Shown piece after piece: positions 49,701-55,700 of a DNA stretch of 64,000 bases. The stretch covers positions 61,380,001 through 61,444,000 of the forward strand of contig OZ260664.1 of assembly GCA_965285935.1 (NCBI GenBank). Direction: 5' to 3'. The DNA is from Ophelia neglecta (taxonomy: Eukaryota). The translations under genes and the position numbers were made by a program. Each line of letters opens with the position of its first letter. The stretch's first letter is position 1. The notes under the pieces were generated by a model, which was not told the DNA's origin, ran no database searches, and worked only from the letters and a program-made list of their open reading frames with translations.

Positions 49701-52700
49701 GTTCCTTCACATGAGTTAATACTACTGACTATAACAAGCAAATAATTGTATCAACTGAGTATAAAGCAATAAATGTCTTACCTTTGAATGGTACAAATGC
49801 GTGGCGCATGCTGACTGAGAAGGAGGATTTGCCGTCCCCCGTGTTGGAGAGGACCCCGTGGCTGGGAGGCGGCAGGCCACCATGTTTACCCAGGAGCGCT
49901 TTACTTCTCAAATTAATTTCTTGCAGGAAAACTTGATCATTCTCATCTGGTGTTTCTGGAATGGTGAAAATAACTTTCAAACAAACTGGCTTTAAGTTAT
50001 GGCCAAGAAACCAATACATTGCCATTGGTCACCAAATGGGTATTCCAAAACAGCAGATTATCTTTCCCAAATGTCTTTTCAAATTACACATACAAGGCTA
50101 CTAAAATATATTTACTTGTACCTAGAGTATTCAATTACTTCTGTTGTAACATATTTATAATTACCAGTCTGGCTACCTGGTAGTTCTCTAAACCTTCCTA
50201 TAAACTACATTGATTGAAGATATTTGATATACTGGTACTGGGCCTATATAAACAAAGGTAGGCATCAAAACCAAGGCAGCAGCACTATCAGATCAACACA
50301 CACAGACTGTCACCAGAAATGTAAAGTCACGCAGGGCTTGACCCATTATCATGCCAAGACCCACATAATAAGTGTTTTCATTTCAGTAGCAGTGAACTGC
50401 CTTCTTATATGTGTCAGGTTCTATTACATTATACTAGATATGTGATGACTACCACTGCCAGCAATAAGTAAATTGTTAATGGCATTCAGTTCTCTTGTTG
50501 AGTAAATTTCATTTCTATGACAATAACACTTAGTGAGCTGATGAGTTTATTGTAGAGATGTTGTGGATTACAGACTGAGGTGAGGTATCATGCAACAATC
50601 CTCTTACACAATATACAGGTAAGTGACGGCTAGCATGATCCAGTAAATCTTATCTCATTAGACCTTGTATCTTAACTCAAAGAATCAAAGTCTTTATTAT
50701 ATTCAAGTATTATATTAAAGCGATAAAAATGCATTTAATCATTTTTTCTTGACATACATTATTGACATGTTGATGCTACGTACTGACAGGCCTTTCACAA
50801 CTGACACTCTACACTTGAAACTGCCATCACAATCCCAGACGGTACATAAATAGTCCATACCTGACAGCTTAAACTAACAGGCAGAGCTTCAATCTAGAAA
50901 TGGTAAAAGTTGGCTTGAGTGGCTAAGGGGTTTCTAAGTCTATGTCAATGATTCTATCTTAAGGGAAATCATTTTTATGCACTAATGGTTGTTCACTGAC
51001 ATTAAATACAAATATTATAATATTTTACAGATCGCAAGATTATTAGACAGGAGCAAATGACTTGGGAGTTAGAAGTGTACTTTATCTCAGATAAATTAAT
51101 ACAAAGTATTCCATGGATTTATTGTCAGACTCAGCAGACAATTCTGGGGGAATCTCGTCTGATCAACTAGGAAGGGCAGTACCCTCGAGCAGGGTGAGAA
51201 CTGCTCGTAACGAGGACAACTCAGGTGAGTTGAAATGCATGTGTAACATGAGAATAAATCTAAAATTAATCTATACTGCTACTTAATGCTATGAAACTGA
51301 TTCATTGAAATAGGCTGGCCTGACATAAAAAAAGAAAACAAGTCATTTAGGAGTATTAAAGAGGTGGTGTGCTTGAACATACATGTACTGGTATCATATT
51401 TCACTTGTTGACTGATTTATGTTCTGACTGCATCTGGTAATCAAGTTTACTTCTGAGAATATATAAATAAATGTCTAATTAAATGTGATTGTCAATGGTA
51501 CTTCAAACCAAATTGAGACAAAAATGAAATATTTTATATATAGATGTCTTTTCCAATAAATACTTGTATAAAAATTATGGCTAGCACTGATTGACTAAGT
51601 AGTTGCCTGATACACATTTTAAAGTTTGACAGTTAAGGGAGCCCTTGGAGAGAGTAGATCAGTTTTTTTAATATGCCATGAAGCTGTGAGAGGAACACAT
51701 TTATTCACTTGATTTCATTCATTTCAGCAAAACTTCAAATTGAGATATCAGTACAGTCCATCACATATTCCAAAAGGCAACATGCAACTTCTTCGCAGGA
51801 GAATATTTACTTACAAACAATGCTACAATTTTACAAGCTGGTAGCAAATGACTTTAGGGGCATGTTTACCATTATGAAGAGATCACTAACAGAGTTGTAC
51901 CAATGTGATAGAATAGATTTAATAATGGATGGTATATTGACCTTGGCTATAGTGATGCCACAGAGTAAGCTGATGTCCCTGCAGTGTGACCAGAGCAGTG
52001 GACAGCTGGCAGAGCTGATCTCAGATACATTGATCACTGAGGGCCTGGTCAGTGAGCTGGGGGTCACCACTCTCAAACTGTCTACAGAACTCACCAATAC
52101 AGGCAGGTCAAACTACCTCTCAGGAACAGGCAACTAGAAATAATAATATCACTCCAAGGAACAGGCCAATAGAAATGATTATATCACTCTAAGGAACAGG
52201 CAACTAGAAACAATAATATCACTCTAAGGAACAGGCAACTAGAAATGATTATATCACTCTAAGGAACAGGCAACTAGAAACAATAATATCACTCTAAGGA
52301 ACAGGCCAATAGAAATGATTATATCACTCTAAGGAACAGGCAACTAGAAACAATAATATCACTCTAAGGAACAGGCCAATAGAAATGATTATATCACTCT
52401 AAGGAACAGGCAACTAGAAACAATAATATCACTCTAAGGAACAGGCCAATAGAAATGATTATATCACTCTAAGGAACAGGCAACTAGAAACAATAATATC
52501 ACTCTAAGGAACAGGCAAATAGAAACGATTATATCACTCTAAGGAACAGGCAACTAGAAACAATAATACCACTCTAAGGAACAGGCCAATAGAAATGATT
52601 ATATCACTCTAAGGAACAGGCAACTAGAAACAATAATATCACTCTAAGGAACAGGCCAATAGAAATGATTATATCACTCTAAGGAACAGGCAACTAGAAA

Positions 52701-55700
52701 CAATAATATCACTCTAAGGAACAGGCAAATAGAAACGATTATATCACTCTAAGGAACAGGCTACTAGAAACGATTATATCACTCTAAGGAACAGGCAACT
52801 AGAAATGATTATATCACTCTAAGGAACAGGCTACTAGAAATGATTATATCACTCTAAGGAACAGGCAACGTCAATGATGGCTACCAATGCAACCCAAGAG
52901 AGAGCACAGGAATGTCACAGGTGTCATCAAATGGCTGAATGGGAAGGCCATCAATCTAATATGAAGGGCACATTTTGACAAGGCATTTGGGTCGATATAG
53001 CCTGCACCTTTGTAATCAAAGCACATTTTGTGAGACCATGAAAACAGCCCCATCTGTAACCAATGTTAAATTTGGTTGCTTGCAAATGAGCAAACTTTTA
53101 TTAAAATGATCATTTTGTTGGTGTTAAAATTCAAGCCATTGTAAAATTTAAATAAAAAGAAACTGCTCAGCTATATTTATCAACATGAATTCTAACTTGT
53201 GGTTTTGGCCATTAACAATTTATGTTCATTTAATATGAGACTACTTACCGATGATGTCAATGTCATAGTCTTTTGGTATGTTCTGTAGGTTGGGTTCAGA
53301 CATGGTCACCCGGCCGGTGGCGGTGTGTGTCTGAGACACCCCGTGGATCCTGTCCATACCTAACCTCCTATTGTACTGTCTCTCCTTCTGGAGAGGGAAC
53401 ACCACTTTAGACAGGGTGCTCCCAATCTTCCTGAAGTCTAATATGATTCCTGGTAAGGGATGAATAAGTTTCAGTTTCTCCAGAATATCTTTGGAGGTAC
53501 TGAAGCCAGATTTAGGCCTGCCTCTGACTGTGTTGGTCCTACGAGTGCCTAGAGTCTTGGTGACACAGGGAGCTGTAGGGTCTCCACTGGGAGGTAACTT
53601 GAGCTCAATGTACAACACCTATTGGTCAAAAAAAGAAAAATTAGAAGAAGAAATGGCATACCAATAAAAACATCTTTCTTGTTCGTTATGTATTTAGTAG
53701 AAATAAACCTGGGGTAATGGCAATGGTCATTCAAGAGTCTTCCATTTAAAGCCAAATGACTATTCCACCATAATCACAGTGACTACTTTATTCTATACAA
53801 AGTCTGACCTGGGAGATGTCATCGGGGGAGGTGAGAGAGAACGGATGTCCTGCCAGCTGGTAAGCCTGCTCCTCCAGGGCAGCTAACTTGGTCTGTAGTA
53901 CATCTCTCTGTCTCTCACTCTCAGCCAAACTAAAACCTACAACAATTATTAAATACACTTGGTAAATTCAAGTTTAACAGCCTAGCTAGGTCTTCTGGTA
54001 AATCAATCAAACTGATATATCAAATGGAATAACAAATTTCAAGCTAGTATTTACCCATTCCATTCAGCTCCATCTTTGCTAGCACCACTATTGAAGGCAT
54101 TTCCACTTGCACAAAGGATTTCATGAGCCCAGCCTTTTCAAGCTCCCTATTGAAGTACTGCATGAGATGTTGGACTAAGACAGACTCAATACATGCTTTG
54201 ATTCTCGGAGGGCCTGGGTTTGAGGGACTCAGGCCTAGACTGCTCAGGCCAATACCTCCTCCTAAACCTTAGATGTATAAAAAATAAATTGATAAACCAG
54301 TAGCAGTATCTGTATGCACCTCTCATTTGTCCTTTTGTCAGGGATATAGTTAAACAATTGACATCAATTTTTAACTTAATTTATTTTGTTGTTCAATCCC
54401 AGACCTAATCCTTCATCTTCTTAAACTGGCTTGGACTATCATTGAAAAAAAGTGGACCAATTTTGATTACATGTACAGTACAGTGCAGGATTGGAATACT
54501 CTGCCTACAATTACATTAATAGTGCCATATAAACCATAACAACCAAAACAAAGGTACCATAGTAGGCCTATAATGTCTCCACCTCAAGTCCTAAATGGGG
54601 GAGGGGGGGGGGGAATCAGGCCAAATCTACTTAATTTCTGTCCTTGGGGTGGGGGTAGACTTGCTACAAGTCTAAATAAATAAAATTCAGTTTCTTACTG
54701 CGGCTATGCCTTAAATTGGATTATTCAGGAAATGGAACAAGTATTAATTTGTAAGAAGCTGGGATTTCCTTATAATGGTTAATATAAAGACTATCAACAT
54801 GTGAACAAATTCCTACCTTCAAGTAAGTGAGACTGAAGAGGTGTGAAGTTTGTCACCATTCTGTGAAGATTTTTTTCTTTAGCTCCAGGGTCTAATAACC
54901 AGCTGGCCACTTTGGGATCTTGAAAAGGACCTGCTGGTAGTAGTGAGCAGCCTTGACAACAGACTTTATACTGCTCCTTCAAGTCGAATGTGGCCTTTAC
55001 AGCAGTGTTAGTAGTATGGGCTGACTGTAGTACTTCTCTGACGGCTGTCAGTCTGTCCGACACAGACAGACCTGGGTCCAGGGGAGGGGGTGCTAAACTG
55101 TCATTGAATACATCTGAAAGGTAACAGGATCATATCACTCCAGGACCTATGTATTGCTGCTCTTACACAGTGGCGAATAGCCTTGCGAACATGATAATTT
55201 GAAATTCCGGCTAATTCGGCAAAAATGAAATGACTGGCCTTAGGAAAATACTGAAAAAGGTGAGGTCTTACAAATGTTCTTCAATGCTTGCAAATTTCTC
55301 ACGAATTCTTGTGAATTTCTTACAAACCTTGCCCTTGCAAATCTTGCAAATGCCATATGAATGAAACGACTATGTCGTGATTTGTATATAAACCCCTTGC
55401 CAATGTTTGGCTTTGTTATTTATTTGCCAGATGCCGCTGAGAAAACATCTTCATATTAAGAAACATTTATTCATACTACATCATGCAGTAGAAGGGGTGG
55501 TGGTGGCAGACTCATGGGCAGGGTAGTGAAGTGAAGTTTATATACCATATATCCTATTCATAGGAATACATATTTTCAATCATAAATGGAAAACGATACA
55601 TAATAGTGGAAGGAGAATATAATGGAAGCTCCAAGGAGCTTATTGCATCCCCCTATAGTGGATAATAATGAATCATGATTAACATATATGGTAAAGTGCT

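Follow-up and report, generated by a model that had tools for sequence, protein, structure and literature searches.

A conserved gene nested antisense in a POLQ intron of Ophelia neglecta, probably encoding a stand-alone TRADD-N-like protein

Until now, the TRADD-N domain has been known chiefly as a bridging module of large multidomain proteins of cell death and immunity. In vertebrate TRADD it forms the N-terminal part (PF09034; structures 1F2H and 1F3V) of a protein with a C-terminal Death domain, and it binds the MATH domain of TRAF2 via Ser67 (PMC8195603). In DEDD and DEDD2 the related TRADD-like_N domain (PF20694) is C-terminal, while the N-terminal part of DEDD is a death effector domain. 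Lineage-specific expansions of TRADD-N are known from marine invertebrates (Kaur et al. 2021, PMC8195603); these exist in multiple copies, diversify rapidly and are joined to death-like domains, repeats or effectors (PMC8195603). A conserved motif consisting of a tiny residue and Ser (“uS”) in the beta2-beta3 turn is typical of the superfamily (PMC8195603). Here we describe a gene on the + strand of a stretch of 64,000 nucleotides from Ophelia neglecta (assembly GCA_965285935.1, contig OZ260664.1, positions 61,380,001 to 61,444,000; the whole stretch is referred to as the window), which lies within an intron of the minus-strand gene POLQ and whose predicted product very probably contains a domain of this superfamily and no other recognisable domain.

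The family to which this gene belongs shares with the marine-invertebrate expansions the superfamily and the kind of animals, but it is single-copy, solo, syntenic and constrained, and in this respect it is closer to the “institutionalised” versions of NCOA6 and DEDD. The TRADD-like_N domain of DEDD/DEDD2 resembles it in the predicted fold and in a 41-residue pattern (hydrophobic-x-x-D-x-x-x-G-x-L ... I-T ... G ... K-L). DEDD is conserved at ~85% identity from this animal to birds and includes a death-fold domain. Such a domain is missing from the new family, which carries an invariant C-D-Q-S-S-G motif of its own and two near-invariant Cys residues, and reaches no Pfam threshold. The N-terminal domain of vertebrate TRADD is likewise composed of a four-stranded sheet and kinked helices, and the alignment spans nearly the whole domain, but the sequence identity amounts to 6%, and a counterpart of the Death domain is absent from the new family. 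Our verdict is that this is a new single-copy, stand-alone branch of the known TRADD-N superfamily, unlike all members described in PMC8195603. The complete interpretation which we favour, namely a real nested gene, a solo TRADD-N-like domain and a role as adaptor or regulator, is probably correct.

The POLQ intron contains a + strand open frame of 151 codons, around which the following features were delimited:

49956..53248, - strand: host POLQ intron in the polymerase-domain part, placed by splice sites and flanking exons
50556..50618, + strand: candidate exon 1 of a preliminary description of this DNA, indicated by a CAG/gtaagt donor at 50618 alone; possibly not real
51031..51112, + strand: putative 5' untranslated region (UTR) of exon 2, following the acceptor ttttacag at 51030 and containing an out-of-frame ATG at 51057
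51113..51224, + strand: coding part of exon 2 (from the ATG, 37 codons and the first base, G, of a split Ala codon)
51225..51727, + strand: phase-1 GT..AG intron between the start exon and the domain exon, placed from the sequence and from relatives
51728..52137, + strand: coding part of exon 3 (two split-codon bases, 135 codons and a TAG stop)
51730..52098, + strand: TRADD-N-like (RRM-like) domain, predicted from an AlphaFold2 model, structure searches and conserved columns
52117-52869, + strand: minisatellite of 35/70-bp units in 21.5/10.7 copies (Tandem Repeats Finder, 88-96% matches)
53151..53156, + strand: candidate poly(A) signal AATAAA, 93 bases before the next POLQ exon

The acceptor of exon 2 (ttttacag/ATCG, 51030/51031) is followed by a donor (CAG/gtgagt, 51224/51225) that matches the consensus at 9 of 9 positions, and the acceptor of exon 3 (tcatttcag/CAAAAC, 51727/51728) is equipped with a pyrimidine tract. 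The junction divides an Ala codon in phase 1 (G/CA), and the joined frame ends with the TAG stop at 52135-52137. All of these elements (the + strand open reading frame, ORF; the ATG; the splice sites of exons 2 and 3; the split codon; the AATAAA at 53151) had been proposed in the preliminary description and were confirmed in position, and the arithmetic of its 173-codon spliced product (37 codons, one split codon and 135 codons) holds. A frame of 151 codons is expected by chance in an AT-rich intron of 3.3 kb with a probability of 0.7%, as estimated from 2000 Markov-1 simulations. An upstream start exon is needed, since any ATG in the frame of exon 3 lies no earlier than midway through the first helix of the domain, and in the 3.5 kb upstream of the exon 3 acceptor, exon 2 is the sole segment that has an ATG together with an open frame (30 nucleotides or more) and a reasonably strong phase-1 donor. 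It encodes a short N-terminal tail of apparently low complexity. The minisatellite, whose 35-bp units are arranged in a 70-bp higher-order period, occupies the putative 3' UTR. The nested gene is present in one copy in the 762-Mb assembly. We are confident that it is a real protein-coding gene of two or three exons, placed antisense in the POLQ intron.

Protein searches were run exon by exon, with 51730-52134 (+) and 51113-51223 (+) used separately. An exhaustive HMMER search of 1.84 billion representatives returned 21 matches, of which 20 (97-179 amino acids, E 3.7e-30 to 8e-4) are true relatives; the twenty-first, P0017, was dismissed as a repeat artefact. In the family alignment (A1, 21 sequences including the window protein) two columns are invariant (Gly91 and Leu93) and seven are near-invariant (Tyr57, Cys59, Gln85, Cys86, Ser89, Leu101 and Leu110), and the conserved columns compose the family motifs Y-x-C and L-Q-C-D-Q-S-S-G-x-L. 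The domain frame of the window is intact over 135 codons, with every near-invariant residue kept. All the homologues are unnamed ORF calls on eukaryotic contigs from ENA, Logan or JGI or on unannotated NCBI contigs, and none has a name in UniRef or nr. A word-indexed protein search gave no match with the single exon and only three already-known members with the family profile; the Pfam search with exons 2 and 3 yielded only a sub-threshold match to PWP3A-B_C, and a PDB sequence search with the family profile a single spurious match to an antibody. Since the homologues are unnamed and there is neither a UniRef or nr record nor a Pfam model, the family appears to have escaped annotation; the small size of its genes, their splicing and their concealed antisense position within an intron are the probable reasons.

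The identity of the host gene is clear from its exons: the flanking exon at 53244-53618 (-) matches DNA_pol_A (3e-16) in Pfam, and exons further upstream match POLQ_helical (2e-38) and Helicase_C. Four other genomes (L002, L003, L005 and L023) likewise have a homologue of the nested gene in this intron, flanked by the same pair of POLQ exons and antisense to them. Their POLQ exons are 74%, 62%, 63% and about 60% identical to those of the window, respectively, and in L002, L003 and L023 collinearity with the window extends over six to ten exons of POLQ. The search for synteny in relatives, suggested in the preliminary description, thus had a positive outcome. No POLQ exon was found in the available sequence of L004, L006, L007, L008 and L022, contigs which are short or interrupted by retroelements. 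Since the nested proteins of the syntenic genomes are only 31-48% identical, the arrangement is old, and its occurrence in at least five genomes makes the POLQ nesting a clean synteny marker. The motif AATAAA is located ~30 bases ahead of the POLQ exon in L005 and ~140 bases past the stop in L002. Most likely, the nesting is frozen, inherited synteny without a functional link to POLQ.

Two further ORFs were noted in and next to the host gene. The central linker of POLQ is represented by a low-complexity exon of 931 codons (56387-59182, -) with the proline-rich repeats S-P-N-P-H-P and P-S-P-A-P-A. Just beyond the 3' end of POLQ there is an ORF of 332 codons (44125-45123, +) without a Pfam match, whose C-terminal part matches a neighbouring ORF in the syntenic L002 (3132-4163).

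At all nine genomic loci that were read (the window included), a phase-1 AG acceptor with a pyrimidine tract is placed 1-4 codons before the first strand of the domain. A cDNA-like contig of a distant relative, L010, matches eight genomic contigs (L011-L018; 97-99% identity, same or sibling species) only downstream of this acceptor AG. The 375 bases that precede the junction in L010 are unrelated and include an in-frame ATG, 15 codons away from it; the split codon is likewise Ala (G/CT). The simplest reading is that L010 corresponds to a spliced messenger RNA from which the equivalent phase-1 intron would have been removed. In L002, the closest relative, the positional equivalent of exon 2 begins with M-D-L-L and contains R-V-R-T before a phase-1 donor, as in the window. 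L002 also has an ATG directly at the acceptor of exon 3.

The runs that contain the stretch, three from a single sample, are all DNA, with introns uniformly covered and no joints. In these reads intron 2 (503 bp) shows eight variants or indels and the 408-bp ORF of exon 3 two (one synonymous, one K>R); in one run there are also two variants within the 63 bases of candidate exon 1. In the domain exon of L010-L018 five variable sites are synonymous and one is non-synonymous (P of about 0.005 for at least five synonymous sites out of six, if one in four is expected under neutrality), and variable sites are denser in the 3' UTR. Between genomes dN (the non-synonymous divergence) amounts to 0.42-0.74, and dS (the synonymous divergence) is saturated or undefined. 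The comparison of dN and dS in orthologues, also put forward in the preliminary description, accordingly shows saturated synonymous sites in a protein that can still be aligned, and a 5:1 synonymous excess in close relatives. As judged from these sequence comparisons, the gene evolves slowly, is conserved and syntenic, and is subject to purifying selection.

The AlphaFold2 model of the exon 3 protein, calculated with A1 as input, has a mean predicted local distance difference test score (pLDDT) of 92.5 and a predicted template modelling score (pTM) of 0.83. Its topology is beta-alpha-alpha-beta-beta-alpha-alpha-alpha-beta, with strands predicted at residues 2-13, 61-66, 70-75 and 112-123 and five helices, which are broken at residues 40-41 and, in the second helix pair, at the invariant Gly91. 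The predicted structure is therefore an RRM-like two-layer alpha+beta sandwich with a four-stranded antiparallel sheet and kinked alpha-helices, as expected of TRADD-N. In a shape search of the ESM-Atlas its closest structural neighbour, in the top row, was a eukaryotic TRADD-like_N cluster (45% of the members with PF20694), with template modelling (TM) scores of 0.65/0.70 and a root mean square deviation (rmsd) of 1.9 Å over 99 residues, the remaining rows reaching 0.43-0.51. When the window protein was used in an Atlas feature search, no usable match resulted. The language-model features of P0020 are similar (0.93 and 0.92) to two TRADD-like_N clusters in which Mollusca are commonest, with TRADD_N, NCOA6_TRADD-N, DEDD and TRADD clusters lower down the list.

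The link to known TRADD-N families at the level of sequence was examined by a comparison of profiles. A1 was aligned using hhalign with A2, an alignment of 20 DEDD TRADD-like_N sequences, with the reversed alignment and 59 column shuffles as controls. The resulting match extends over 41 columns, which correspond to residues 81-121 in the product of exon 3, with a score of 21.5 (P 0.0054), which exceeds the reversed control and all 59 shuffles (best shuffle 17.7). It spans the Asp, the kink Gly-x-Leu, the I-T, the Gly and the last strand, that is the motif which had been recognised by eye in the preliminary description, and it aligns Gly91 with the Gly that is invariant in DEDD TRADD-like_N. 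Of the 21 sequences in A1, one matches PF20694 (E 0.016). A search of the genome with the family profile revealed a further locus, L020 (C2:81594377-81594652, -; E 0.0024, 25 bits). BLASTP matches it to the window protein over a length of 57 residues (3e-6), and it also matches the DEDD profile, without a change of register. The TRADD-N-like domain of L020 forms the C-terminal ~80 residues of a 264-codon exon (L020 1468-2259), on a different chromosome and in a single copy; a Pfam search of L020 gave no match. It is the nearest paralogue of the nested gene, from which it differs as the C-terminal domain of an exon that probably belongs to a larger, unnamed protein, and on its sequence it is a weak intermediate between the new family and DEDD TRADD-like_N. 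The sole PF20694 match in the assembly, L009 (C7:52213553-52213732, +), is the DEDD orthologue, with a TRADD-like_N exon about 85% identical to bird DEDD; no large expansion of the DEDD2 clade was therefore seen in the PF20694 search of the genome. The search of this genome with PF13820, which gave no match anywhere, was uninformative. Taken together, the TRADD-N-like assignment draws mainly on the predicted fold, with which the sequence profiles agree weakly, and according to the model the domain very probably belongs to the TRADD-N superfamily.

The stand-alone character proposed in the preliminary description is borne out by the homologues, whose ORFs stop 2-16 residues after strand 4 (with the exception of P0018, which continues for 40 residues), and by the upstream exon, which codes for only 15-37 residues of apparently low complexity. 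No Pfam domain was found in any family member, and no fusion to a Death-like domain was observed. The predicted product would consist of a short N-terminal tail followed by one globular TRADD-N domain, with no Death-fold, NTPase or enzyme domain. By analogy with other TRADD-N domains, the latter may provide a protein-protein adaptor surface; lacking an effector, the protein might function as a small adaptor, or as a competitive regulator which occupies the TRADD-N-binding site of a partner. The conserved face of the beta-sheet and the helix kink formed by the invariant C-D-Q-S-S-G-x-L would be the likely contact regions. A solo TRADD-N offers a simple system in which the binding of the isolated TRADD-N surface can be studied.

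A number of observations tell against this interpretation, and several of them support other explanations. It could be argued that the gene is real and conserved but that its domain is a generic RRM, ACT or ferredoxin-like fold, which binds a small molecule or RNA and does not act as an adaptor. In the structural check proposed in the preliminary description, the confident RRM-like model and the top Atlas row agree with TRADD-N, but Foldseek against the PDB returned only generic ferredoxin-like folds, TRADD being absent among the matches. An exhaustive PDB search with VIA-align likewise produced a flat list of RRM-like, ACT and ABM folds with Z of 5-7, in which the TRADD-N structure 1f2h is ranked fifth (Z 6.2, rmsd 3.8, 97 residues), tied with the other RRM-like folds. 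The profile evidence is weak (P 0.005), with cross searches between the hidden Markov models of the new family and the DEDD domain giving only 9-13 bits. The Pfam test of the earlier TRADD-N call turned out negative: the window protein matches no TRADD model at E<=10, and no family member reaches the gathering threshold of PF09034, PF20694 or PF13820. In the beta2-beta3 turn the family has small residues in ~16 of 21 sequences, and the plurality residues at the two turn positions, Gly (9/21) and Ser (9/21), agree with the “uS” motif, but the turn of the window protein is Gly-Ile, so that Ile stands at the position of the conserved Ser of the superfamily. As for an adaptor role, MATH domains are not universal TRADD-N partners (PMC8195603). 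We nevertheless consider a generic fold unlikely, since the top Atlas row is specifically TRADD-like_N and well separated from the next rows, the feature neighbours of P0020 are TRADD-like_N, TRADD_N, NCOA6_TRADD-N and DEDD clusters, and the motif, the kink Gly and the intermediate L020 all fall in one register.

Other objections concern the locus itself, and some of them would be compatible with a family that is real elsewhere but silent or decaying here, either as an unexpressed relic or as part of a non-coding antisense transcript of POLQ. The splicing evidence comes solely from the L010 contig of a distant relative. The context of the start codon, described earlier as good, is so with regard to the G at +4 but not to the T at -3; the ATG at 51057 opens an upstream ORF of 37 codons (51057-51170) in exon 2, and exon 1 would contribute two more upstream ATGs. 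The latter exon has a good donor, as had been pointed out, but this is its only support, and no conservation was found in L002 and L003 (blastn of the whole intron matches exon 3 only). The nucleotide similarity of exon 2 to L002 is not significant, its global alignment being no better than at other positions of the intron, and in L002 (9586-9703, in a contig of 2x coverage) the M-D-L-L start and the part running from R-V-R-T to the donor are in different frames. The shift of frame lies near a run of six C, and may be a sequencing error or real. Moreover, the minisatellite begins within the last seven codons, so that the C-terminal tail and the stop are repeat sequence; on the view of a decaying locus it overwrote them, and the Ser to Ile change in the turn motif would be another sign of decay. 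Such a state is improbable in view of the intact frame of the 135-codon domain with all the near-invariant residues, the perfect donor and strong acceptor, and the lower density of variants in the ORF than in the intron. A third explanation, in which the ORF arose by chance or was left by a transposon, might invoke the AT-rich intron and the unsupported exon 1, but it is already refuted by the 20 homologues, the synteny in five genomes, the single copy and the purifying selection. Finally, it is conceivable, though very improbable, that the solo TRADD-N-like protein belongs to an ancient core of signalling in these invertebrates and that the antisense, convergent position of its gene in POLQ is functional. 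Transcription of the nested gene or of POLQ would then modulate the other, tying the repair polymerase to a death/immune adaptor, and such coupling would explain why the arrangement survived while the identity of the protein fell to about 30%.

Elsewhere in the window, the minus strand of positions 14000-19100 is occupied by a GC-rich (about 51%), strongly GC-skewed block of tandem repeats, with overlapping ORFs of up to 625 codons that consist of a repeated ...P-V-Q-P-S-G-L-H-P-R-T-T-K-W... unit. A single-exon ORF of 447 codons (28143-29486, +) encodes a calcium-activated potassium channel of the SK type, with Pfam matches to SK_channel (2e-44), CaMBD and Ion_trans_2.

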